DNA of 64,000 nucleotides from Macrostomum lignano (Eukaryota): NCBI GenBank assembly GCA_002269645.1, contig NIVC01002733.1, positions 1 through 64,000 of the forward strand, in the 5' to 3' direction. How positions within the stretch are numbered: position 1 is the stretch's first letter; every line of letters begins with the position of its first letter. The notes below the pieces were generated by a model. That model had not been told where the DNA came from and ran no database searches. It saw nothing but the letters and a program-made list of their open reading frames with translations. A program made the position numbers and the translations under genes. Shown here piece by piece: positions 2,163-57,880 of this stretch.

Positions 2163-7414
<5,252 letters not shown>

Positions 7415-7877
7415 CTGAAAAACAACTGCTATTTTTTTAACGACAATTTGCTATGCTTGGCAAGCCATGCTGGGCAAAAATTGTTCGCGTCTGGTCTTGG
7501 CTCTCTCGTTTGAAGGTTAGGCGCCTCGTATTGTGGGAATTTAAGAAGCACTGTCTATGGCCCGCAGGCGACTTGGGCGGACCCTATAAGCTAATTCTCT
7601 TCTTGATTGCAGCACCAACGTGTCGTACTCATAACGGCAGGTTGTGTCGTTCTGCCGTATTGATGGCATTTGGAATAAAAACTCAAGAAGTCAGCAAACA
7701 AAAAGTCTTCGTGGTGACCATAGACGCAAAGTTCAATCTCGTCTGTCGATATGTTGATCCAGTTTCTAAGCATAATTAACTCTCCTGAGTTATGAAATTG
7801 AATCACCTACAGTGCTATGAAATGCGTCACTTGGGGCTGATGCAATCTGAGAGCACTTGACCATTTGGGGTTGGGAA

Positions 7878-8749
7878 GCCAGACACTTAGGTGCAAGACA
7901 CTTCGGTGCAAGACACTTCGGTGCAAGACACTTCGGTGCAAGACACTTCGGTGCAAGACACTTCGGTGCAAGACACTTCGGTGCAAGACACTTCGGTGCA
8001 AGACACTTCGGTGCAAGACACTTCGGTGCAAGACACTTCGGTGCAAGACACTTCGGTGCAAGACACTTCGGTGCAAGACACAAAGGTGCCAGACACTAAT
8101 GTCCCTGACACTTCGGTGCAAGACACAAAGGTGCCAGACACTAATGTCTCTGACACTTCGGTGCAAGACACAAAGGTGCCAGACACTAATGTCCCTGACA
8201 CTTCGGTGCAAGACACAAAGGTGCCAGACACTAATGTCTCTGACACTTCGGTGCAAGACACAAAGGTGCCAGACACTAATGTCCCTGACACTTCGGTGCA
8301 AGACACAAAGGTGCCAGACACTAATGTCCCTGACACTTCGGTGCAAGACACTTCGGTGCAAGACACAAAGGTGCCAGACACTAATGTCCCTGAAACTTCG
8401 GTGCCAGACACTTCGGTGCCAGACACGGTACCAGACACTTAGGTGCCAGACACGTAGGTACCAGACACGGTACCAGACACTTAAGTGCCAGACACTTCGG
8501 TGCCAGACACTTATGTCCTAGACAATGCGGGGCCAGACACTTACGTCCCAAACAATTTGGCACCTAAGCGTCTGGCACTGAAGTGTCTGGCACCGAAGTG
8601 TCTGGCACCGAAGTGTCTGGCACCGAAGTGTCTAGCACTTAAGTGTCTGGTACCGTGTCTGGCACCGAAGTGTCTGGCACTTAAGTGTCTGGCACCTAAG
8701 TGTCTGGCGCCGAAGTGTCTGGCACCCCTTAGTGTCTGGCACCGAAGTG
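7878..8749. repeat. 15-bp satellite (GTGCCAGACACTTCG) arranged as an inverted repeat (foldback-like)
   Basis: Forward units 7878-8550, loop CAA at 8553-8555, reverse-complement units (CGAAGTGTCTGGCAC) 8556-8749. Confidence 0.9.
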
Positions 8750-9086
8750 AAGTGTCAATCTACTCTGAAGCAACAATGAAAGAAACAATTAGCAAGCCAG
8801 AAAGCCACAGAAATGATAATTCTTTACTGGTTTATTGAGATATCTCGTTTCGTCTTCTAACACGTGGCAACTCATTCTTAATACGAGGCCATAAAAAAGC
8901 AAGCTTCAGTTTTACCCAATTTGTATCTATCTGTTAATGAGTGCAGAAATGTATGACAAAATAAATACATTGAACTCAATGAATGCTCTTGTTTTTGAAA
9001 GGCCTTACTACAATTTTCGATTTAAACATGCATACGCTTATAGTTGAAGTTCTGTTTGGGTATTGCAAGTCTCAGGTTGAAGTCAG

Positions 9087-12000
9087 TCAGTACAGACTGG
9101 TTGAAGTCTGGCCATCGAATATTAGCGAATAATTATTTTGAAACACCAGCGGATAAATGAATTTGAATTTGCGCGATTTGTAGACCACTTCCAGAGCGAG
9201 ACCGACTGCCTCCTGGATGACGCCAGGCATGAGGCGTTTCAGCACCTCGGTGTGAGTTGATAGCGATGGACTCGAGTTGATGTCAATTAGCCATACCTGT
9301 TAGTTTTGTCAGTTTTAATTTGTTTAAATAGACTTAGGGCATTATTGAGCATGGGCAAAAGTCTCAAGTGTTCATGCTGGACGATCGATAACTTTCACTT
9401 TACAATGTGGGGACCCTGAAATTAGATCTTAATACCTGAAAAATGCGATCTCTAACTAGGGGATTAACATCTGGATGATGGGATCTCTAATTAGGGAATT
9501 AACACCTGAATGATGCGAATCTTCAATTAGGGGATTGTCACCTGGATGATGGGATCTCTAATTAGGAGATTAACACCTGGATAATTAGATCTCTAATTAG
9601 GGGATTAACATCTGGATGATGGGATCTCTAATTAGGGGTTAACACCTGGATGATGGGATCTCTAATTAGGGGTTAACACCTGGATGATGGGATCTCTAAT
9701 TAGAGGATTAACACCTAAATGATGGGATCTCTAATTAGGAGATTAACACCTGGATAATTAGATCTCTAATTAGGGACTAACACATGGATGATGGGATCTC
9801 TTATTAGGGGATTATCACCTGAATAATGACGAATGAATTTCAACAATTTAAAATTGAGCCTCACCTGCATTCGACTGTCAATAAGAAAGTCGCAGCCGAA
9901 TATTTCGAAGCAGCGTCGCCCCCGAATCTCCATGCCGTTCATGAGGGAGACAATGTAGCCCAGAATAGCTTTAATCCTTGGGTGCAGCCGGTTGTGCACC
10001 CAGTCCAGACCAATGTCCAACTCCCTGTGACGCTTGTTAAAGTAGCAGTTCAACTCCCCTGGCGACCATGTGGTGGCCTCTTTGACCCTCTGGTAGCGTG
10101 GATCGCGTTTTTGCAGGGCCTGGTTAGTCAGGTGCACAGTCAGGGTTGTGCTGTCCTTCTCGTAGCGTCGGCAGGTTAGCCGAACGTATCCGGGATGGTA
10201 GAAAGCAAACAGAGTGTTCTTCTCCTGATGCGGTACTACTAGTAGGAATACGCGCAAATCGAACTTGCGCTTGTCAACTAGCAGAGGGTCGTCAATGTAC
10301 CTTCATTTGCGACACAGAAGTTTAGAGGGCTCGATCGTTTCACGATGTCGAAATCAGATTAGGATTTTATTTGGGATTAATACCTGGATCAATAGTATCT
10401 CTAATTGGGGGTGGTTATTACCTGTATCAGGTAATCCCTAATTAATAGGATTGATATCATGGGTTCTCTAATTTAGAGGATGAATCCTATAAGATCTCCA
10501 ACTGGCGAGAATAATCCCCGGATAGTGGGATCTCTAATTAGGGGATTAATACCTGGATAGTGGGATCTCTAATTAGGGGATTAATACCTGGATAGTGGGA
10601 TCTCTAATTAGGGGACTAATATCTGAATGATGGGATCTCTAATTAAGGGATTAATACCTTAATTATCGGTATTATGGAGAAGTTATGGCAATGTGAAACT
10701 TCGATTTTCTGCAAGCAAACAGAGAGCTCACTTTTGCACCAGAATGTCGCCGGCGTTGAAATTTTTAAATTGCTCCTGAACCAGAGTGGCGAACTCTTTT
10801 AAGTCGCCGCTAGATCGATAGAGCTTGAGCTCGGAGCCCTGGCTTGAGTTGCTAGGCTTCAGAATCCAAGTTGTCCCCGGTCGCTCTGGAGTGGGTTGGA
10901 GAATCTGTGAGAAAATTCTCCTGAATGCAATGAGTCTATATGATGCAAGGTTATTTAGTGCATTCAGTGTCCTGGCAACCGTGTCACGTGTATAGCTCTG
11001 GGGCGTGCTGGAGAGGCTGAGGCAGTGAATTCTGCATAATATCGTTTGATATTTAATAGGCATTCGCTAGGGTGCATCAGAGGAATGTACTTTTACCTGA
11101 TGCACTGTTGGACTGCCGAATAAGTGATGTAATAAAAGTGACAAACAGTTGTTAAGTGGGACGTGTTAGATAGGGGGTGCCAAGTGTTAGATTAGGAATG
11201 TCACATATTCGATAAAGATTTTACCTGTTAGACAATAAATTTCACCTGTCAGGTAAGGAATGTCACATGTTAGATAAAAAATGTCATCTGTTAGATTGGG
11301 AATATAACCTGATAGATAAGGAATGGTACGTGTTAGATAACGAATGGCACATGTTAGATAAGGAATTCACCTATTAGATAAGGAAATTCACATGCTAGAT
11401 AAGGAATGTCATCTGTTAGATATGGGATGTCATCTGTTAGATATGGGATGTCATCTGTTAGATATGGAATGTCATCTGTTAGATAATGAAGGTCACCCGA
11501 TAGATATGGAATGTCACATGTTAGATATGGAATGTCATCTGTTAGATAATGAAGGTCACCCGATAGATATGGAATGTCACATGTTAGATATGTAATGTCA
11601 TCTGTTAGATAAGGAAGGTCACCCGATAGATATGGAATGTCACATGTTAGATAAGGAATTTCACATGTTAGATCTGGAATGTCAAATGTTAGATTAGGAA
11701 TGTCCCCTGTTAGATAAGGAATGTCACATGTTAAGTAAGCATGTACTGTGTAGTCGGAAATATTGTCGAAAATTCTATATTTAATGAATAATTACTGTTT
11801 CAACTATAATTTTAATTACATTATGACCATTGAAGTCAAAAGGGTTCTAAAAAAGGACTAAGTTATGTTGATTAAAGTTTCATAATAATATCCCCAAGCC
11901 ATCAGGTTTTTCAGTTTCAAGAACACTCACGAATTTCTCGTCTAAACTCGTCGCTCATGGGATGCAGCAGGTAGGACTTGGGCAGCAGAGCGTTCATCTG

Positions 12001-15000
12001 AAGTTCGTCCGGGGCGTGCGGACTTCGGTTCATCCACAGCAGCTTGTACAGGCCGCACTTGCTGGACATTCGAATGCGACAGTTGATTCGGCTCAGGATT
12101 GAGTCCTCTGGATGGATTTTAGACTGTTTCTGCTTTCAAACTTTTTTTTTATTGAAAAAATTAATTTCTCTTTTCTTGTAAGATAGGGATGTCACGTGTT
12201 AGATAGGGAATGTCACCTGTTAGATAGGGAATGTCACCTGTTAGACAGGGAAAATGTCAACTGTTAGATAGGGATGTCACGTGTTAGACAGGGATGTCAC
12301 GTGTTAGATAGGAATTTCAGATGTTAGATAGGGAATGTCAGATGTTAGATAAGGGATGTCAGATGTTAGATAGAGAATGTCCCCTGTTAGACAGGGAATG
12401 TGACCCGTTAGATAGGGAATGTTACATGTTAGGTAGGGAGAATGTAATATGTTAACTAGGTAATGTCACTAGTTAGATAGGAAATGTCAGATGTTCGATA
12501 GGTAATGCCACCTGTTAGATAGGGAATTAACTTTTATTCATTAAGCTTGTGCACACTCTCCCGCTGCTTGTATTAACCTGGATAAGCTGCCGCAGAGGCG
12601 TTGGCGGACAAGCCGGAGTAGCCGTAGCGCCACACTAAATGATGCGATCGTTTGGTGATGGCCACCTGGTTGACCTTGGTCCTGTCCTGCCACCGCAGGT
12701 GCGACATCAGCTCTTCGATCCTTTGTGAGATATGGATTTTTTAGAGGGGGGGGGGAAACAGTGTCAGTAGGGGGTACTAAACTGGGTGTCCGAGGGATAC
12801 TAAACTGTGTGTCCGAGGGATACTAAACTGGGTGTCCGAGGGATACTAAACTGGGTGTCCGAGGGATACTAAACTGGGTGTCCGAGGGATACTAAACTGG
12901 GTGTCCGAGGGATACTAAACTGGGTGTTCGAGGGATACTAAACTGGGTGTCCGAGGGATACTAAACTGGGTGTCCGAGGGATACTAAACTGGGTGTCCGA
13001 AGGGTACTAAACTGGGTGTCTGAAGGGTAACAAGCTAGGTGTCCGAGGGGGTACCAAACTGGGTGTCCGAGGGATACTAAACTGTGTGTCCGAGGGATAC
13101 TAAACTGGGTGTCCGAGGGATACTAAACTGGGTGTCCGAGGGATACTAAACTGCGTGTCCGAGGGATACTAAACTGCGTGTCCGTACTAAACTGGGTGTC
13201 CGAGGGGTACTAAACTAGGTGTCCGAAGGGTACTAAACTGGGTGTCCGAGGGATACTAAACTGGGTGTCGGTACTAAACTGCGTGTCCGAGGGATACTAA
13301 ACTGGGTGTCCGAAGGATACTAAACTGGGTGTCCGAGGGATATTAAACTGGGTGTCCGAGGGATACTAAACTGGGTGTCCGAGGGATACTAAACTGGGTG
13401 TCCGAGGGATACTAAACTGGGTGTCCGAGGGATACTAAACTGTGTGTCCGAGGGATACTAAACTGGGTGTCCGAGGGATACTAAACTGGGTGTCCGAGGG
13501 ATACTAAACTGGGTGTCCGAGGGATACTAAACTGTGTGTCCGAGGGATACTAAACTGGGTGTCCGAGGGATACTAAACTGGGTGTCCGAGGGATACTAAA
13601 CTGGGTGTCCGAGGGATACTAAACTGGGTGTCCGAGGGATACTAAACTGGGTGTCCGAGGGATACTAAACTGGGTGTCCGAGGGATACTAAACTGGGTGT
13701 CCGAGGGATACTAAACTGGGTGTCCGAGGGATACTAAACTGGGTGTTCGAGGGATACTAAACTGGGTGTCCGAGGGATACTAAACTGGGTGTCCGAGGGA
13801 TACTAAACTGGGTGTCCGAGGGATACTAAACTGGGTGTCCGAGGGATACTAAACTGGGTGTCCGAGGGATACTAAACTGGGTGTCCGAAGGGTATCAAAA
13901 TGGGTGTCCGAAGGGATACTAAACTGGGTGTCGGTACTAAACTGGGTGTCCGAGGGATACTAAACTGGGTGTCCGAGGGATACTAAACTGGGTGTCCGAG
14001 GGGATACTAAACTGGGTGTTCGAGGGATACTAAACTGGGTGTCCGAGGGATACTAAACTGGGTGTCCGAGGGATACTAAACTGGGTGTCCGAGGGATACT
14101 AAACTGGGTGTCCGAGGGATACTAAACTGGGTGTCTGAAGGGTAACAAGCTAGGTGTCCGAGGGGGTACCAAACTGGGTGTCCGAGGGGTACCAAACTGG
14201 CTGTCCAAGGGGTACCAGACAGGGTGTCCGAAGGGTACCAAACTGGCTGTCCGAGGGGTACCAAACTGGGTGTCCGAAGGGTGCCAAACTGGCTGTCCGA
14301 GGGGTGCCAAATGCGGTGTCAGGCAAACCGAGTAGACCGTTAATTCGCAACAAAATTGAATAAAGCCGCTCAATCCGATCCGTCAAAAGCTCACATCTCG
14401 GCTCCCAACGTTGATTCCAAAGAATAAGTGCCCAGCAGAGTGGGATATGTGTCCAAGAATATATGGCACTTATTAGCCAACGGGTACGGATATTTCACCA
14501 GCTGGTTCTCCATGATTCTCTCTAATTTCGAAGCCAGACCAGTGTGCACTGTGCACTGAGTGTCCCTGGTCTGCGCGTCGCGGTCCTTGGAGCCGCCGGC
14601 GAAGCCGCCGCCCTGCGAAGCAGCCGTTGCGGCGGCTTGCTGCTTGAATTTCTGCGTTTTCCGAATCTTCAGCAGGCAGGGCGGCCGAGCCGGGTGCTGC
14701 TGCTGGCTCGGCGGCTTCACGATGGTCAGGCGGACGCAGTCGCCTTGGATGGTTTTGATGGCTCCCTCGTCTTCGGGACTTCGGTCTTGCTGTTGGGGTT
14801 GCTGCTGCTGCTGCTGCTCCTGCTGCCCTCTTGAGCACAGATCGCTGACTGAAGATCTACAGAGATGAATTGTAGGTGTTAGTAAAAATATTATCAATTT
14901 TAATAGGTGGATTAATCTGTGGGACCTGAATGTGTAGATCGGAATAAATTCAATTTAGAAACTCATATCTCTATTTACTAGTATAGCTTCTATTTTATTC

Positions 15001-18664: not shown

Positions 18665-26653
<7,989 letters not shown>

Positions 26654-42090: not shown

Positions 42091-43353
<1,263 letters not shown>

Positions 43354-49095: not shown

Positions 49096-52000
49096 TTAGC
49101 TCTTTCGTTTCTGATGTCTTCCCTTTTTGGATTTATTCGCTATGAGTGGTCTTTTGCAGCAAGCTAGCTTGCATGTGCAGGGCCACTGGTTGAAGTTCGG
49201 TGGCGGGAAGTTGCCGTCATTTAATATATGCTTTATTGTATTAGCCAAGTTTGATTCAGAGACCGGATTTTCAGAAAAATACTCCCTGAGAGCATTGACT
49301 GTGCACTCCAACCAGGTTATCGCAGCGTCTGAATGCTTTTTATCAGTAGCGACCAGCGGCAGCATGAGGGCTTCAGCTCTGCCACGAGCGATCGCTGCGG
49401 CGGTTTTTATCAGGAGTTGACTGATGCTGCCTTTTGTTTTCTCGTTTACATATGCAATTGCCTCTGCCCTTTCCATGGCCTCTTTGTACAAGTTTGGAAC
49501 GGTTTTCCAATAATTACATCCACCTTCTAAATCGATTCTGGTGCGGTTGTAAATTAATCGCTGTCTCTGCAAATGGTAAAGCGTTCTCAACCGCTTCCTG
49601 ATATGTGTTGCGGCCAGTGTCGCATTGACGCCATTTGGGTAATTTTGCCGCCTACCAAATGGATGCCCAACTCTCCTAAAAAAATATTGCGCACTGCTTC
49701 TGCATGCGACTGCTCCGTTGAACTTGCAGCATTCTTCATGGATTTCGGATTTTTTCTCGGCTGTCAAAAACTTCTCGAGATCGCTCTGTCCTGTGTCTGT
49801 ATATTTTTGTCGATTGCTATTCTGTTCCTTCTGGACATCTTCCACTGAAGCCCAAATGTGAAAGTCAGGATTGTCACATGTAGGCTTAGCGTATGCGCCG
49901 CAACGTTTGAACCTGGGCACAAGAAGGTCAAATACTATTTTTCTAAACTTGAATTCTTCGTATATTTCCGCGTTTTTATTCTTTTTGTCGTTGCTTTTCT
50001 TTGTATTCTCAGCGCTATTTAGAGCCAATGTTGTAGTCGTCTTTTTTGCTTTTTTACTTGTCGGTTCCTCAATCATTTGCAATACGTCTCTTAGCGAAAC
50101 TGTTGTACAGTTTGGTTGGTTGGAATCATTTTGAGGAAAAAAACTTTCTTTTAAAGTTTGAAACATTCCCTTTCCTTCTGCCAGGTCGCTGAAATGATCT
50201 TCTAGCTCCCTTTTCTCAATATCCGTGACCGGATTTTTATACACAAGCTCCTCGCAAAAGAAAGCAACAGGCTGGATCGGGCTCTCCACTTTGAGCACAA
50301 AATACACCGGCATTCTCTTTGCTTCATTGCTCTTTTCAGCATTTAGTGCGAACTCTAAAGTGTGACCATCTGGATGCCGCAGTTCAAAGTCCCTTCCCTC
50401 TGTAGGCACGGGCATAGCAGCCGCCAGCTCGACTGCGCCGTCCCAGAACTCTCTGCAGTCTTTGCAGTCTTTTTCCACGAAGCTGTGAATGACGCACGGC
50501 TCACTTTCACGGGTGAACGGACTGTCCGTCAACCCGACACCCTTGGCGCACAGGGACGTCATGCCCTCCTGATGTCCGGCACGGATCTGCAGCAGGGTGC
50601 GAACGGATCTGTGCACCATCGGTTCGGCTGTGTCCTTATTAAACTGGATGCAGAATCCGATTTCACCTGCTGCTGAATTGTGGCACAGCAGCCGCAGAGG
50701 CCAATGGTGCACTTTTTTTCTATTTTTTCGTCTCCACACAGTCACAGGCTGGTCGTCAAGAAGTCTGAATTCCCCGTTGATGACTGCCAACTGGAGTCCC
50801 TGCCATTTGACCCACCCACCCGTGCTGCTGTCTTTGGTCAGCTTGTTTGAGCTAGTAGGTTCGTGGCCGAGTTCGGGGCAGTTGCTGAGCACATGAACGC
50901 TTTCTTCCTCTGCTGTGAATACCATTGGCACGTCTATCACAGGAAGCATATGAGCGATTGGCTGGCTACAATCCAGGTAAACGAGAACCACAACCTTAGA
51001 CACCGTCGTACTTATCAACTTCTGCTCAATTGCCACTGGCTGCTGGTCAACCACTACTTTCAACTCCTTGAGTCCCGAAACACTTCCATCTGGCAGGACT
51101 CTAGTCGCCACTGAAATAGACTTTCCTGCCGTTACTGAACTTCCTTCCTGACTTATGAGTTCCACTGTACGATTTTCCAACTCTCCTCTTACTCTGAGAT
51201 GCACTTCCACTGGCATAAGTGAGTCTTCTGATTCGTGAGTGCATTCGCAAATGTCCCACTTTTTATCCTCTGTCGTCAACTGAGATACGGTTGCGATGAG
51301 GTCAGCTCCATCAGTGACCAGCTGGGCTCCATCCGGTTTGTCTTTCTGCATGCTGAGGCTGCAGTTGTACAACTTGTTGTTGATGACTGCTTGCACAAGT
51401 GGCCGAACCTTCCAATCATGTTTTGAGTCTATATAAACAAGAGGTACATGAACGGGTGACTGCCACTCCCGCTTTTGATCATCAAGTTTCAAATGCAGAT
51501 TCCCAATACTCAAGTTCGAAACCCAGACTGCCGACATGCCTTCGCAGTGTTCGACCTTGAACCGGAGGGTGATGGAAGTGAACTGCTCAACTGCCACCTC
51601 ACCTTTGCAAACTCTGACGAAAAAGTCGCCAATCCGTTGGTCAACCTGGTCCGGCATTTGGCGCAGAATGTGCACCTTGTTTGTAACTATAATCTTGTAC
51701 GAAATGACTTCTTCTACAAAATTGAAGTCTTCGGAACATGCCAGTTGAAATTCTTTGAGTTCGTCTGACGACTTTGTCTTTGCTTTGAATTTAATGGTTT
51801 CACCATTTCTAGTCCACACTGCATCTTTCCGTTGAGCGTCTTGTACTTTTACGATCTTAGACGTTGAGAAAGTTTCTCCATCAAATTCAACTACAGATCC
51901 TTCTCTAGCAGTATTCTCATCAAATTGAAAGCTCAGCTGCAGCAACTGTTGCACTTTCTCCGGTGGTTTTAGGCTGGCCGGGTCACTCAATGTGTCTGAA

Positions 52001-54642
52001 GCAGCAGTCGGCTCTGAAATCGACTCCCTGAAGCGCTCCTGCTCATTGCCACTGGGATTCTGGTGTCTAAATCTGCACCAGACTCGCATGAGAAACACAA
52101 ACCATTCGGTTGCTTCTCGCATGTGCGACTCTCTATCAGTTTCCATGGGCAGCACCAGAGCTGCTTCCATCCGACCTCGAACGATAGCGGCTGCGTGTTC
52201 AAGTAGAGACTTGTAGTGCTGCTCTGCTGCTAGCAGCTGCTCTTCTGTCACAGCATTCAAGCCTTTTGTTGTGACACCGAGTAGTTCAAAGACTTTCTCC
52301 CCTCGAATACTGTACGTTTTTCGCAGTCTGGTAAATACCGAATTCCTCGCTTCTTCAACATTCAACGTTGAATCGCTGACGATTCTGTGCACACACTGAA
52401 TGGCGGACTCTTTTGTTTGGTTTGGATTGCCAACTGGGTCTGTTCCGTCAGCTTCTCTCCAGATGTTGTGCCACTTGGAAGGAGTTCCAGAAGTTTCCTT
52501 GGTTCTGCCGTCGTATGAGCCGTCCTTTTTGATAAGAGGCACCAGCAGCTGAGCGTAAGTAGATTTGACGTCGACAAAGCGAATGGGCGAGCCTCGACTG
52601 CAAAGATGGTATCTGGTGAGAGCGTTCGTAAATTCGTTTAAAATCTCAACGCGATCAAAAGTCGCTGATAAAGCCATGGTGTCCTTAGTGGTGTAGGTTA
52701 AAGTGCCTGCAGCACCGACATCAGACGGTGGCTTCTTATCTTCGGTAATCGACTCCCTGAACCGCTTGTGCTCATCGCCATGGGGATTCTGCTTCCTGAA
52801 CCTGCACCAGGCTCGCATGAGAAACGCAAACCATTCGGTTGCTTCTCCCATGTGCGACGCTCTGTCAGTCACCGATGGCAGCACCAGAGCTGCTTCCATT
52901 CGACCGCGAACGATAGCGGCTATGTGTTCAAACAGAGATTTGAAGCGCTGCTCTGCACTACGCTGAAGTTCAGAGACTTTCTTCTCTCGATTAATGTATG
53001 TTTTTTGCAGTCTGTTAAATACCGAATTCCTCGCTTCTTCAACATTCAACGTTGAATCGCTGACGATTCTGTGCACACACTGAATGGCGGACTCGTTCGT
53101 TTGGTTTGGATCGCCAACTGGGTCTGTTCCGTCAGCTTCTCCCCAGATGTTGTGCCACTTGGAGGGATTTCCAGACGTTTCCTTGGTTCTGCCGTCGTAT
53201 GAGCCGTCCTTTTTGATAAGAGGCACCAGCAGCTGAGCGTAAGTATTTTTGACGGCATCGAATTCAATGGGTTTTCCTTTTAGCTGTATCTGTACCTTAT
53301 GATGAGGTAATTGCATGTTTTCATGTAGGCGTTTCAGCACCGAGTCCCTTCGCCAAGATAGAAAATCGCAGTCAAACTGACGCATTTCAAGGCTAAAGAA
53401 TATAGGCGGGTCTGAAGACTCGGACTCTGAAAACTCAGAGTTTGTATCTTTGTTTTGCCAAAGGGTCACGTGAGCTTCGAATCTCGTGTTAAGCCATACT
53501 TTACTCACTCGAGGGTACAAACTCATTTTCAGTTTCGTATTTTCGTCTTTAACTGTCACCGCCATCTCGCACTCAAAGTATTCGCCATCCAGTGTCTTCA
53601 GCAGCCAGTCACCGCGGCAATCTTCAGCGGTAGCTACAAGCAGGCAGTCAGTGTGCCATGCTGAATCGAAGGGGAAAGCTTCTTGCCTGGAAAGTCTCAA
53701 TTCAGTTTCACACAGGCCAGTCAACCTGATGTCAGTGACCTGATCTTCCAGGCCGTCTACAAAGAAGCTGACTCTCCAGTTTACGATCTGGTGGACGTTC
53801 ACGCCCACATGGTCGAAGTCGACAATGAATCCTGAGCTCTGCAGCATGGACTCTGATGACTCACACGACAGCGGCACTGTTTGGCTTGGCATGTCGTCAT
53901 GCAACTCGTTCAGCTCGTCGTTTAGTTTCAGGCGAACCTTCAGAGGATCTCCATCTGGTGTGCGGATGCTTTTGTCTTCGCCCTGATGCAAGGTCTCGGA
54001 AGTTTCAATCTGTTGGTTCGAATACCTGTACGCAGTGTAGCTTTTTCCAAGACACGCGAGCCTCACGCGAAGTGCACCTTGAAGCTTTACACCGCTGCCG
54101 TCAGCAACCATTCTGTTTTGATGCGTCTGCTGACACAGCTCCTCACAGTTGCCGAGCACAAAAACCTCGACGCCTGAATGAGCGAGAGCTCGAAACTGCA
54201 GCTGCACAGGTATTACTGGATGTGCAGACACCGTCCACGTGTTTTGTCTCTCATCAATTAACACGAGAACTTCCACAACGTTGTTCAGTGCATGTTGCCC
54301 ATTTAAAATTTGTATTACATTCTCTTTAGAGAGTTTCAGCTCACTCTGACTATTGACGGTCACTGAAAACTCCAACGGGATTCTGTCAGGCAGAATCAGG
54401 AATTCTCCACCGGACCTCATTTCGGCTTGCAGGCACGGAACCGCCGACTCGTCTCTTTCAACTTGCGATCCGACATCAAAATCAGCTGTGACAAACACTT
54501 TTTCATCTTCGAGAGTGTCTTTTTGATGAAGCTGGTACTTCTTACCTGCTAGCGAGACGACACAGGTGGACTCTGCATCGACCAATTGCGTCTCCACGCG
54601 GTAGTGAAGCCGCAGCTCAATCTGCTCGGGTTCATTAGACAT
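49096..54642 (-). CDS. Uncharacterised 1848-aa single-exon protein with internal domain repeats
   Basis: 5547-nt uninterrupted, non-low-complexity ORF. In-frame TGA two codons before the ATG. TATA and CCAAT upstream. Internal homology blocks (see findings). Confidence 0.93.
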   Translation of the reverse strand: MSNEPEQIELRLHYRVETQLVDAESTCVVSLAGKKYQLHQKDTLEDEKVFVTADFDVGSQVERDESAVPCLQAEMRSGGEFLILPDRIPLEFSVTVNSQSELKLSKENVIQILNGQHALNNVVEVLVLIDERQNTWTVSAHPVIPVQLQFRALAHSGVEVFVLGNCEELCQQTHQNRMVADGSGVKLQGALRVRLACLGKSYTAYRYSNQQIETSETLHQGEDKSIRTPDGDPLKVRLKLNDELNELHDDMPSQTVPLSCESSESMLQSSGFIVDFDHVGVNVHQIVNWRVSFFVDGLEDQVTDIRLTGLCETELRLSRQEAFPFDSAWHTDCLLVATAEDCRGDWLLKTLDGEYFECEMAVTVKDENTKLKMSLYPRVSKVWLNTRFEAHVTLWQNKDTNSEFSESESSDPPIFFSLEMRQFDCDFLSWRRDSVLKRLHENMQLPHHKVQIQLKGKPIEFDAVKNTYAQLLVPLIKKDGSYDGRTKETSGNPSKWHNIWGEADGTDPVGDPNQTNESAIQCVHRIVSDSTLNVEEARNSVFNRLQKTYINREKKVSELQRSAEQRFKSLFEHIAAIVRGRMEAALVLPSVTDRASHMGEATEWFAFLMRAWCRFRKQNPHGDEHKRFRESITEDKKPPSDVGAAGTLTYTTKDTMALSATFDRVEILNEFTNALTRYHLCSRGSPIRFVDVKSTYAQLLVPLIKKDGSYDGRTKETSGTPSKWHNIWREADGTDPVGNPNQTKESAIQCVHRIVSDSTLNVEEARNSVFTRLRKTYSIRGEKVFELLGVTTKGLNAVTEEQLLAAEQHYKSLLEHAAAIVRGRMEAALVLPMETDRESHMREATEWFVFLMRVWCRFRHQNPSGNEQERFRESISEPTAASDTLSDPASLKPPEKVQQLLQLSFQFDENTAREGSVVEFDGETFSTSKIVKVQDAQRKDAVWTRNGETIKFKAKTKSSDELKEFQLACSEDFNFVEEVISYKIIVTNKVHILRQMPDQVDQRIGDFFVRVCKGEVAVEQFTSITLRFKVEHCEGMSAVWVSNLSIGNLHLKLDDQKREWQSPVHVPLVYIDSKHDWKVRPLVQAVINNKLYNCSLSMQKDKPDGAQLVTDGADLIATVSQLTTEDKKWDICECTHESEDSLMPVEVHLRVRGELENRTVELISQEGSSVTAGKSISVATRVLPDGSVSGLKELKVVVDQQPVAIEQKLISTTVSKVVVLVYLDCSQPIAHMLPVIDVPMVFTAEEESVHVLSNCPELGHEPTSSNKLTKDSSTGGWVKWQGLQLAVINGEFRLLDDQPVTVWRRKNRKKVHHWPLRLLCHNSAAGEIGFCIQFNKDTAEPMVHRSVRTLLQIRAGHQEGMTSLCAKGVGLTDSPFTRESEPCVIHSFVEKDCKDCREFWDGAVELAAAMPVPTEGRDFELRHPDGHTLEFALNAEKSNEAKRMPVYFVLKVESPIQPVAFFCEELVYKNPVTDIEKRELEDHFSDLAEGKGMFQTLKESFFPQNDSNQPNCTTVSLRDVLQMIEEPTSKKAKKTTTTLALNSAENTKKSNDKKNKNAEIYEEFKFRKIVFDLLVPRFKRCGAYAKPTCDNPDFHIWASVEDVQKEQNSNRQKYTDTGQSDLEKFLTAEKKSEIHEECCKFNGAVACRSSAQYFFRRVGHPFGRRQNYPNGVNATLAATHIRKRLRTLYHLQRQRLIYNRTRIDLEGGCNYWKTVPNLYKEAMERAEAIAYVNEKTKGSISQLLIKTAAAIARGRAEALMLPLVATDKKHSDAAITWLECTVNALREYFSENPVSESNLANTIKHILNDGNFPPPNFNQWPCTCKLACCKRPLIANKSKKGRHQKRKS

Positions 54643-54729
54643 GTCTCATTGTCTGACTTCAAAACCATTGACAATGCAGCATTGTTTCGTTCTTCCTGTC
54701 GCAGCATAAAAATGAAACAGAAAGGGCTC

Positions 54730-54787
54730 TTATATAGTACGGACTGGATTCAAGGTACCAACTCACACAGCTGTGTCTTGTCATTGG
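54730..54787 (-). promoter_or_regulatory. Putative core promoter of the 1848-aa gene: TATATAA (54730-54736) and CCAAT (54783-54787)
   Basis: Motifs read on the - strand about 90 and 140 nt upstream of the ATG, with Inr-like TCATTT near 54713. Confidence 0.5.
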
Positions 54788-57495
54788 TTGGTTGCCCTAA
54801 TCAATGGAGCCACCCCGTTATTTCAGAGAAAGAGTAACGCATGTGAATGAACCCATGCCAATTTTCTCTGTCCTCTCTGTCTTCTCTCTTTCCTTTTGTA
54901 GATCTGAATCTTTACTCGGAAGCTGAATAGACCCAATTTTGGACATTGTACCTAGCCCGTACTGCAATCTGACCTCGAAGATGTCTGAGCCGACGTTCCC
55001 AACGTCTATCGACATCTATGACAGTAGTATAGTATAGGAAAAAGTAGTTTAAGCGCTAAAATTTCAAAAAAATGACCAAAAACAGATGAAAATCGACTAA
55101 AAACAGGTGAAAATGCTCTAAAAACAGCGATTTTAGTGAATTTCCAAAATTTTTGAAAAATTTCTTTTTGCGCAATGTCGTGACCATTAAAACCATAGGA
55201 AATGTCTGATTCGTGGGTTAAAATAATCTATTTTTAGGTATAAACATTTTAAAAGTACCATCTAATTTAATAATAGTCATTTATTCTATCGCGTAACGCC
55301 CTTCAATAAACCAATCATACCCCTTCATACACCATCATACATCTTTCCAAGCTACCTTGTATGCATAAACATTACGAGTATGACTTGTACCTTATTTACT
55401 CTAGCCATACAATGCTTCTACAAAAGACAACAATTTGGCTTTAATGGTGTTTTTGATTTGTACACAACAAGAACAAACCGTAGTTACGAAACACAAAACA
55501 AACAAACGCACACCATAAGCACCATTTCTCATTTCTCAAAGGCTCATTCACACTGAAATCAAATGAAAGACCAAATCAAACAACTCGTTTGACCACACAG
55601 TCACAGAGTTTCTAAATTTTTCTGTGATCACTGAAATCTCAGCTAACTTAGAAAATTTTCAAATTCAGCGACAAAGTCAATAACGCGAGGGCCAGTTGAT
55701 CAACTAAAACGCTGTACAATGATCGTTTGCCTCTTACACAGCACTCCAAGTTGCGCAACATGCAAAACTCAACTCAAGCCACTCTATTTTAACAACTCTC
55801 CGTCTAGTCTGACTGTCGCTTCAAAATTGATTGGTCATCACACCAGTCAGGTTACTAACTATTTTATTATTTTTCATCACATGAGCCGGGGGTCGGTAAA
55901 CTCCGGCCTTAGAAACTCCACAATAGTAATTAGGCCCGCTCAATGTTTGTCTCCTTTCAGCGCTCTTCTCTCTTCTCTCCTCTCTTCTCATCTCTTCTCT
56001 CTTCTCACCTATCTCTTTTCTTTTTTATTCCCCTTTGGTTGCCACTGGAACCCCTGGTGTAAACAAAGTGCAAGAAAATCCTATTCTATACGACCTTCGG
56101 CACTCTGACAATCGAAATACCAGGAAAAAGGACGATCAGAAAAGTTCAATATGCTAGGTTTTTCGTTAGCACGCGCCAGTTATATCAATAAGAGCGCTGG
56201 CCTTTGTACTCTGATATAGACTGTACACTGGTATTGAATTTAAAGCACAAAATAGTTTTCTCAAACGTGCTGAAAATATGTACAATTTAGGCTCAGCTGG
56301 AGATATGTGCAAATCTTTACAAACAAATTGTAAAACCTGCATCACCCTCCTCTAAACCCCAGACCAGTCATTCTCCTCAGTCAGTTGTCAGTTGTCAGTT
56401 GTCACATGTCAGTTGATTGCAGTCGCAAAAGTCAGTTGATGGCGTGAAAAACTGGATGTGATTGTCAAAGATTCGTTAATCATCAACTGAAATTTTGTGG
56501 GATCAACTCGAAAATTGGCCTCATTTGATGCCGGTGTGACGAAAGCCCGAAATCCGAAAACCCCCAACTGAGTCAATTAGGCAGCTCGCAAGTAGACAAA
56601 CTTTGCTTGATGACTAACACAGGAATTCGGGGTTTTCTATTAGCTATCCATCTAATCGCGCTACACACAAAAGAAGCTCGCACCGCAACAATGACCAGCT
56701 ATTCAATTGTCTGACCATCATAGACTGGCCACTTCAATATTATCATTCTTAGATACTGTAGTAGAGAGGTTCTAACCCACCCACTCAACATTCCCTTGAG
56801 ATGAATCAGATGAATCAGGAAAAAGATGAATCATAGTTTTTTGAATGAATGATGAGGCCAGCTTTTGCATGGGAATGGAAGCACTGGAATTGTGCTTATA
56901 CATCGAAGCGAAAAAAACAACGGCCCCCTCTCATCTCGACCGGGGCTATCCAGCCAGACCAGCTCTACACAAAAGAAAAAAATAACAAAAGCCGAGGTTT
57001 GAGGGCCAAGCCTGCAGCCTGCGGACGCGTGACACAGTATAGACTCGAAGCAATGCTTTGGGGGTGATATTGCTGCCTAACAACGGCACACAGAGAAACT
57101 GCTCGAGCGATATCCCTGCACCGCTCTAACTATGCATTGCTGTGCATTTTTCGACTAAACCAGTTTGCTTGCTTGACTGGACTTGAAAATACACTGTCTT
57201 GAATAATTTGCGGTACAGAGCAAATTCGGAGATGTGAGCCTCACTTACTCATAAAAGGGCCCTTGGAGGCCAGTGAGTTAGAAAGTCTTTCTGACTTGTG
57301 AACAGAAGATAGCAGGAAAATAAAACCTGTTATAGGAAATAGGGGAAAAATACTGAAACCAAGACTAGCGTACTCATTCCCGAATCCCTAACCTACAAAA
57401 GGCAGTGTTCCTCTGCACTTCCACTCACAAGTATCTCTTCAGATTTTTCCTCTCTGTTAAATTTTCCTTTTCGAAGGACCTGTCAGCAGACAGAG

Positions 57496-57612
57496 CTGAG
57501 GGTTGCTTTCATAAACGCGAAACTTCACAACTGCGAAACTTCATAACCGCTAAAATTTCTGGACTTACTTTCAGCGGTTGTGAAGTTTCGCGTTTATGAA
57601 ACCCACCCTCAG
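57496..57612. mobile_element. 117-bp palindromic element (MITE-like hairpin)
   Basis: Perfect 25-bp inverted arms 57507-57531 and 57577-57601; outer CTGAGGGT/ACCCTCAG; flanks CAGACAGAG and CAGACAGCA. Confidence 0.65.
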
Positions 57613-57880
57613 CAGACAGCAGCACTGCACCCCGTTCGCAAATTATTTTTCAATTGCTTTTTTATTAAAGCAATTATTTGCTTTCAATTTCTACTAGCCC
57701 GTCAAGACTAAAAATTTTCACCTGTAAAGCTAATTAGCACTTAATCTGGCAATTTGTGTATTTTTGTATTATATAATAGTTTAATATTCAATTGACTACT
57801 GTAATCTATAATATACTTGAGCGTACGTATCAACATCCGTTTCTGTTGTGTTTACTTCTATACAATTATGAACGCGTTTC

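Follow-up and report, generated by a model that had tools for sequence, protein, structure and literature searches.

A lineage-restricted family of intronless genes in Macrostomum lignano that pairs CBM20-like beta modules with an unclassified helical domain

Carbohydrate-binding modules of the CBM20 type that are found in cytosolic animal proteins, such as GPCPD1 (GDE5), laforin and STBD1, target their partner domains to glycogen. Here we analyse a gene of the flatworm Macrostomum lignano whose product appears to carry relatives of these modules alongside a helical domain, here termed H, of no recognized family. The gene lies in a 64,000-nucleotide (nt) stretch of DNA, referred to as the window, that comprises positions 1 to 64,000 of contig NIVC01002733.1 (assembly GCA_002269645.1), so that window coordinates are contig coordinates. 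It occupies positions 49096..54642 of the minus strand and encodes 1848 amino acids (aa); we call it the window gene and its product the window protein.

Like GPCPD1, laforin and STBD1, the family to which the window protein belongs has the strand-loop signature 'G-x-C-x-x-L-G-N' in its beta modules and no signal peptide. In contrast to these proteins, its partner domain is the unclassified helical domain and not a phosphatase, a GDPD or an autophagy-receptor region, and a single protein may carry up to three or more of the modules. STBD1 differs also in having a hydrophobic N-terminal membrane anchor, which is without counterpart in the window protein, and in its domain order, which is reversed: in the window protein, the beta modules are N-terminal. 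The CBM48 domains of the AMPK/SNF1 beta subunit and of the branching enzyme (N-domain) were the top Foldseek neighbours of a module model, at non-significant scores, and gave no sequence match. Another point of comparison is provided by the 'flatworm-specific' genes of M. lignano (e.g. PMC5816591), which likewise lack homologs outside flatworms and are known only from genome and transcriptome annotation. Unlike those, neither the window gene nor its paralogs are named in the M. lignano papers that we searched, their locus tags being absent from both text and supplements.

The reading that we favour, at a probability of roughly 0.55, is that this is a resident nuclear gene of M. lignano and the largest member of a Macrostomum-only family of proteins built of beta modules and H domains. 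A scaffold role of the protein is included in this reading as a part held at low confidence.

The window gene and its family

The window gene is an uninterrupted open reading frame (ORF) that runs from an ATG to the stop codon at 49096-49098, and it is on record in GenBank as a single-exon coding sequence (CDS) of 5547 nt. A run of 1848 unbroken sense codons in DNA of 46-49% GC cannot arise by chance. In 2-kb intervals, the GC content rises from values of mostly 0.36-0.42 beside the ORF to 0.46-0.49 across it. Tandem Repeats Finder returned 58 rows for the window, which merge to 22.7 kb (35%), and placed no tandem repeat between 48522 and 58067, hence no satellite within the ORF. Within the ORF, the sole repeat is a stretch of ∼0.7 kb that occurs twice in tandem (period 684-729 nt) and encodes the first two helical domains, H1 and H2.

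A preliminary description of the window, made from its letters without database searches, had singled out this stop-free, intronless and satellite-free 5.5-kb frame among genes split into short exons, leaving its strand unstated. Its structural observations hold up well. The surrounding TTL, G-alpha and EF-hand exons are recognized as such by Pfam; the proposed order of a beta-rich module A, H1, H2, a beta-rich module B, a Lys-rich linker, H3 and a basic tail agrees with self-comparison and with the hidden Markov models (HMMs) of the family; and the internal duplication is real, H1 and H2 being 71% identical. Hydropathy and Pfam scans bear out the reported lack of a signal peptide, transmembrane helix, transposase, reverse transcriptase or P-loop. 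The bias towards G or C at third codon positions (GC3), judged by eye to be weaker than in the neighbours, is indeed 0.51 in the window gene versus 0.71 in the pooled TTL, G-alpha and EF-hand exons, and the TATA element claimed upstream is present, accompanied by a CCAAT motif (Table 1).

A word-indexed search of 5.8 billion proteins yielded one relative, the hypothetical protein BOX15_Mlig011933g1 (P0002, 2111 aa), which is encoded on another contig of the same assembly (NIVC01002696.1), is 84% identical to the window protein in a global alignment and has three tandem H copies versus two in the window protein. An exhaustive phmmer comparison of aa 649-1848 with 1.84 billion representative proteins added five further matches, with E-values from 4e-12 to 5e-4, all of them in the H domain. 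Four are annotated hypothetical proteins of M. lignano (Mlig011641, Mlig034522, Mlig010431 and Mlig026577); the fifth (P0007), a UniParc entry without a name, contains a Mlig026577-like segment and looks like a mis-predicted chimera. Yet another member, Mlig008397 (P0008, 898 aa), is 76% identical to the paralog P0004 and carries extra modules. The relatives of the window gene are thus one homeolog and no fewer than five paralogous genes, all of M. lignano. The preliminary description had called it a lineage-specific orphan. The first term is upheld by the exhaustive scan, in which relatives came only from M. lignano; the second is only partly right, given the homeolog and the paralogs.

The design common to the family consists of N-terminal beta-rich 'G-N-C-x-E-L-G-N' modules followed by one C-terminal H domain of ∼240 aa, which in the paralogs ends in P-x-F-[YF]-[RK]-W. 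When 11 H copies are aligned, 22 columns prove invariant, and all 22 are kept in H1, H2 and H3 of the window protein. They fall into the motifs L-V-P, G-x-Y, H-x-I-W, R-L-x3-Y-x2-R, A-A-x2-R-G-R-x-E-A and H-x6-W and a terminal F, and include two His, four Arg, one Glu and two Tyr as invariant polar residues, which persist across copies that are only ∼20-30% identical. Identity between the H domains of paralogs is ∼30%; H1 and H2 are 29-34% identical to the paralog domains and 21-23% identical to H3. Each H copy of the window protein ends at the invariant Phe of the C-terminal motif, the PNFNQW at the end of H3 being the family's P-x-F-x-x-W.

Within the family, the number of H copies varies from one to four and that of modules from one to three or more. 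The window protein has H domains with the invariant motifs, at least one 'GNCxEL' module on the N-terminal side of H, an uninterrupted CDS and no signal peptide. Given that a family unit has its beta modules in front of H, the window gene resembles a head-to-tail fusion of two units in which the first H was duplicated: [beta-H1-H2]-[beta-H3]. The paralogs P0003, P0004 and P0006 are single-exon genes, and the six family genes that were read at their loci each consist of an uninterrupted ORF. Judged by these sequences, this is a small, previously undescribed, species- or genus-restricted family of intronless genes, of which the window gene is the largest member.

The domain map of the window protein is given in Table 1. 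A BLAST self-comparison found no similarity between modules A and B, and hhalign joins only aa 140-253 with aa 1232-1347. We therefore rejected the view of A and B as whole duplicates: a single module of ∼115 aa is all that they have in common. Hydropathy analysis of the window protein found neither a transmembrane-grade segment (maximum Kyte-Doolittle mean over 19 residues, 1.47) nor an N-terminus resembling a signal; the family-wide maximum is 1.61, and the segments concerned resemble beta strands. Scans of the full protein found no family of Pfam, NCBIfam, PHROG or PADLOC, the only Pfam match (BAR_4, E=0.07) being one that does not recur across the H copies, and a search against PDB sequences gave non-significant matches only (nucleobindin, E=0.086). 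An RVxF-type docking motif for protein phosphatase 1 at aa ∼1567-1571 (R-K-I-V-F) was considered and discarded, as neither H1 and H2 nor the paralogs conserve this position.

The Cys-rich, polybasic C-terminus is specific to the window gene and its homeolog. The Cys cluster is absent from the paralogs, and the region around it is otherwise only ∼59% identical to the homeolog. Cluster and tail together could be a metal site, a signal for lipidation or membrane association, or a nuclear localization signal (NLS); the tail by itself could be NLS-like or membrane-associating.

Table 1. Features of the window gene, its upstream region and the neighbouring exons (aa numbering refers to the window protein; distances are from its ATG).
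Feature	Position	Strand	Observation
N-terminal part of module A, aa 1-139	54226..54642	-	No detectable relative; no signal peptide
'GNCEEL' beta module 1, aa 140-253	53884..54225	-	Putative CBM20-related family module; hhalign probability 76% against the paralog-only profile
Remainder of module A, aa 254-454	53281..53883	-	No detectable relative
Helical domain H1, aa 455-682	52597..53280	-	Lacks the middle 40-odd positions of the family profile
Helical domain H2, aa 683-905	51928..52596	-	Tandem duplicate of H1; AlphaFold2 model all-alpha
First part of module B, aa 906-1231	50950..51927	-	No detectable relative
'SNCPEL' beta module 2, aa 1232-1347	50602..50949	-	hhalign probability 80% against the paralog profile, 73% against module 1
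Remainder of module B, aa 1348-1530	50053..50601	-	No detectable relative
Lys-rich linker, aa 1531-1556	49975..50052	-	Assigned from the sequence
Helical domain H3, aa 1557-1824	49171..49974	-	Most divergent H copy; has inserts; ends in PNFNQW
Cys cluster WPCTCKLACCK, aa 1820-1830	49153..49185	-	10 of 11 residues identical in the homeolog, only Ala differing
Polybasic tail KSKKGRHQKRKS, aa 1837-1848	49099..49134	-	7 of 12 residues are K or R
TATATAA	54736-54730 (-94)	-	Candidate core promoter element
CCAAT	54787-54783 (-145)	-	Promoter motif, ∼50 nt upstream of TATA
EF-hand exon (Pfam)	42094-42504	-	Short open stretch
G-alpha exons (Pfam)	23093-26650	+	Short open stretches
TTL-family exons (Pfam)	2166-10302	-	Short open stretches

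Two loci of paralogs showed further features. In P0005 (6001-10707 of locus L006), the sole annotated 'intron' is an in-frame skip of 660 nt (220 codons) within a low-complexity QKESD tandem repeat; no stop interrupts the genomic frame (1568 aa), and this 'intron' may be an artefact of transcript assembly. The flanks of the same gene (L006 2610-4840, plus strand, and 12600-13349, minus strand) carry transposase-like ORFs of the THAP9/P-element type (TNP-like RNaseH_N and GBD domains) and an ORF with a BIR domain. About 150 nt downstream of the P0004 gene, at 8105-8302 of locus L003 (plus strand), there is an open fragment of 66 aa that matches the C-terminal part of H (HMM positions 185-240, E=9e-15) and is probably a remnant of a duplicated 3' end.

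Beta modules, the H domain and a possible scaffold

The CBM_20 family (PF00686) scores above the Pfam gathering threshold in P0004 (37.8 bits) and in P0006 (24.0 versus a threshold of 23.3) and is precomputed for P0008; when the modules were scanned singly, 3 of the 13 matched it. The link from these modules to the window protein was tested in a non-circular way, with an HMM built from the paralog modules alone, without those of the window protein. This model matches the window protein at exactly two sites, aa 146-193 (9.6 bits) and aa 1245-1281 (13.4 bits). In hhalign comparisons, modules 1 and 2 are matched to the paralog profile and to each other with the probabilities listed in Table 1, and no other segment of A or B matches anything. 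The best sequence neighbour of the module profile in the PDB is the CBM20 domain of GPCPD1 (2z0b), at a non-significant E-value of 1.3 and over the stretch 'G-S-C-D-A-L-G-N-W'. An AlphaFold2 model of aa 136-256 is all-beta, and its closest Foldseek neighbours, 7xsy_A, 2qlv_B and 1z0n_A, are glycogen-binding beta-sandwiches (a branching enzyme, the beta subunit of SNF1 and the glycogen-binding domain of AMPK), at non-significant E-values of 0.16-1.8 and template modelling (TM) scores of at most 0.35. On these comparisons, the beta modules appear to be descended from, or related to, the starch- and glycogen-binding beta-sandwich of CBM20.

The H domain is a case apart. The AlphaFold2 model of H2 is an all-alpha helical bundle with a mean predicted local distance difference test (pLDDT) score of 68.5, rising to 76-89 in the core helices, and a predicted TM score (pTM) of 0.72. 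Foldseek searches with this model gave nothing significant among PDB structures (best E=0.79, TM score 0.27) or the viral predictions of BFVD (best E=0.55), and no Pfam family recurs across the H copies. The best PDB sequence match of the H profile is 2gmy, an AhpD/CMD-like protein, with E=0.066 over the AAIVRGR-x-EA helix and the His that follows it. A relationship to AhpD and carboxymuconolactone decarboxylase was nonetheless rejected: the E-value is non-significant, Foldseek returned nothing AhpD-like, and the residues that are matched to the two Cys of 2gmy around this helix are not Cys in the H domain. On present evidence from sequence and model comparison, H is best left unclassified, with no apparent relative in Pfam, in the PDB or among viral structures.

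What the protein might do can be stated only in conditional terms. We tentatively suggest that it is a non-secreted, multivalent scaffold whose modules would dock on a polymer, glycogen being the obvious candidate, and whose H domains would carry a conserved activity, although we consider this distinctly doubtful as a whole. As no member of the family has a secretion signal, such a scaffold would reside in the cytoplasm; its beta modules would attach it to the polymeric ligand, be it glycogen or another polymer, and the H domains would bind a small anionic ligand or act as a catalyst. The invariant Arg, His, Glu and Tyr residues of H would fit an anionic-ligand site. Glycogen enters this model because CBM20-type modules target their partners to it and because the family lacks secretion signals. 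A bolder version, in which H adopts a novel helical fold whose conserved polar site binds or modifies a phosphorylated or otherwise anionic sugar, and in which the family forms a flatworm-specific glycogen-handling system, strikes us as unlikely; in that version, the CBM20-derived modules would be the targeting device and the copy number of the domains would tune valency.

Several observations weigh against the reading of this gene as a member of a beta-module family with a scaffold role. Neither the whole window protein nor its isolated modules match CBM_20, even at E≤1, and their tie to CBM20 appears to be transitive, through the paralogs, and mainly to cover the first half of the domain. 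The aromatic residue directly after L-G-[ND] is the glucan-stacking residue of binding site 1 in CBM20 domains. It is present in 2z0b ('LGNW') and absent from every module of the family, the window protein having 'ELCQQ' and 'ELGHE' instead, and canonical glucan binding may have been lost in these modules. It is because of this missing site-1 aromatic and the weak CBM20 scores of the window modules that we hold the glycogen part of the model at low confidence. The module model is poor (pLDDT 55, pTM 0.49) and has no significant fold match, and ∼60% of modules A and B is without any relative detectable by hhalign. As for H, it has no relative of characterized function, so that any activity assigned to it is a guess. 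Finally, data on expression, localization or proteomic support for the window gene were not retrievable from the literature searched.

Homeolog, selection and origin of the gene

The window locus and the P0002 locus (L001, on NIVC01002696.1) are collinear from ∼36.8 to ∼58.3 kb of the window (∼21 kb), flanking satellites and the EF-hand exon included, at 86-94% nucleotide identity. Because of this collinearity, we regard the two loci as homeologous or duplicated-chromosome copies and not as dispersed copies of a mobile element. Between the two genes, the rates of non-synonymous (dN) and synonymous (dS) substitution are 0.095 and 0.148, which gives a dN/dS ratio of 0.64 (codon-bootstrap 95% confidence interval 0.54-0.78). 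No bootstrap replicate reached 1, and the ratios of individual domains (0.53-0.65) are all below 1. The window gene is under purifying but relaxed selection and evolves far faster than its EF-hand neighbour.

The preliminary description had proposed dN/dS as a check on the gene, and the ratio lies below 1. Still, 0.64 is high, the 3' third of the gene has strongly diverged from the homeolog (62-82% nucleotide identity) and H1 has an internal deletion, all of which would fit a decaying or functionless relic whose frame is still open. Such a relic is nevertheless quite improbable, given that frames of 5.5-6.3 kb have stayed open in both copies despite 14 insertions or deletions and ∼545 substitutions, that the bootstrap excludes a ratio of 1 or more, that the three H copies retain every family-invariant residue and that a transcript-derived gene model exists. 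The deposited models come from a genome-guided RNA-seq transcriptome from which novel transcripts below 0.5 reads per kilobase per million (RPKM) were discarded and repeat-overlapping transcripts were excluded (PMC5730564). That this ORF has a model therefore indicates, if indirectly, that it is transcribed and did not count as a repeat; on this indirect basis, transcription of the window gene is very probable.

Divergence between the two loci is uneven. In a comparison of window positions 54760-57629 and 49100-50150 with L001, identity is 94-100% (mostly 98-100%) in the upstream flank, 94-98% in the 5' part of the CDS, 90-95% in its middle, 62-82% in the H3 region and 80-84% in most of the 3' flank. 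The EF-hand exon (L001 21622-22032, plus strand) is 100% identical at the nucleotide level to its window counterpart, without a single synonymous difference in 107 codons, and the non-coding DNA around it is ∼90% identical. The mosaic pattern suggests recent homogenization of the 5' side, for example by gene conversion.

The candidate promoter elements are also found at the homeolog locus, where TATATAA stands at -95 and is again accompanied by CCAAT; the pair does not occur within 300 nt upstream of the genes at four paralog loci. The preliminary description had reasoned from intronless, internally duplicated and TATA-driven genes to a stress or immune effector, a role for which the analysis found evidence in neither direction. 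Downstream of the TATA box, the putative 5' leader contains ATGs ahead of the main one, and from one of these a frame of 52 codons extends across the main start codon (54549-54707, minus strand). The TTL-domain exons at the window's left end form two sets, 2166-3806 and 9090-10302 (both on the minus strand), which cover overlapping positions of the Pfam TTL profile (68-282 and 104-252); this suggests two TTLL genes or one duplicated gene.

A long intronless ORF of a multicopy family in a repeat-rich genome might also be the protein of a transposable element, either cargo or a transposase that has escaped recognition. We find this explanation hardly credible. Pfam detects no transposase, reverse transcriptase, integrase, capsid, packaging, helicase, nuclease or P-loop domain in the window protein, and there are no long terminal repeats (LTRs) or terminal inverted repeats (TIRs) within 48.4-58.2 kb. 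Each paralog type is represented by one gene or one diverged pair (76-84% identity) and not by many near-identical dispersed copies, the window gene pair has collinear flanks, dN/dS between the syntenic copies is below 1, and the deposited gene set leaves out transcripts that overlap repeats.

The preliminary description had favoured, among other origins, a virus or horizontal transfer from a microbe. The gene is intronless and has no homolog in other animals, and its GC3 falls below the 0.65-0.92 of host exons, all of which would be compatible with a foreign source. The low GC3, however, is common to the whole family (0.48-0.56 versus 0.65-0.92 for conserved host exons at the same loci; the non-coding flanks have a GC content of 0.33-0.40), and the members of this family are deeply diverged within the genome. 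At ∼30% identity between paralogs, the family must have been resident for a long time. No sequence relative was found in IMG/VR viral contigs, GTDB prokaryotic genomes, JGI metagenomes or phage and plasmid records, no PHROG was assigned, the H model has no significant match among predicted viral structures, and CBM20-type modules are ordinary domains of eukaryotic cytosolic proteins. With the collinear homeolog locus and the age of the family added to this, the idea of a viral or horizontally acquired gene has to be regarded as highly improbable.

A further point in favour of a viral origin is a block located 4-10 kb upstream of the P0002 gene (L001 2-5785), which has a GC content of 0.34 and holds four long ORFs without annotation. 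One, cut by the start of the locus, encodes 632 aa of a D5-type primase-helicase (PriCT_2, D5_N and DUF5906); another, of 493 aa, has an Endonuclease VII domain; and two, of 550 and 256 aa, have no Pfam match. Three of the ORFs are consecutive on the minus strand. Neither at the nucleotide nor at the protein level does the window contain a match to the block; IMG/VR has no close relative of it, and small decayed fragments of it lie near two paralogs (L003 and L005). Its absence from the window led us to reject a link to the gene family. In view also of its differing GC content and its scattered fragments elsewhere, we take it for a dispersed virus-like repeat that inserted independently and is unrelated to these genes.

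A retrocopy at the root of the family, followed by DNA duplication and domain shuffling, is a possible origin, although we would not bet on it. Genes of the M. lignano assembly have on average ∼4.9 introns (PMC5730564) and the neighbours of the window gene are split, whereas all six family genes are uninterrupted, the 'intron' of P0005 lying in frame within its repeat. On the other hand, no intron-bearing parent was found in any database, and the flanks of the window gene show neither a poly(A) tract nor a target-site duplication. The absence of these marks does not settle the question, because in a family this old (∼30% H identity) they would have decayed. A retrocopy origin is compatible with the explanation of the window gene as a resident member of a Macrostomum family and does not compete with it.

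Implications

The prospect of a foreign gene, a viral gene or an immune effector, which had made this locus attractive in the first place, is without support. What remains is a lineage-restricted, fast-evolving and intronless family with an unclassified conserved domain, of a sort that flatworm genomes commonly contain. Expression and localization data are readily obtainable in M. lignano, which is a transgenic model organism.

The family defines a domain of ∼240 aa whose invariant residues are clear and for which Pfam, the PDB and viral structure predictions offer no counterpart, and it pairs, in an animal, CBM20-like modules with a new partner domain. It also offers a clean case of modular growth in a neopolyploid genome, where units appear to have been fused, the number of H copies has changed between homeologs and the number of modules differs between P0004 and P0008.

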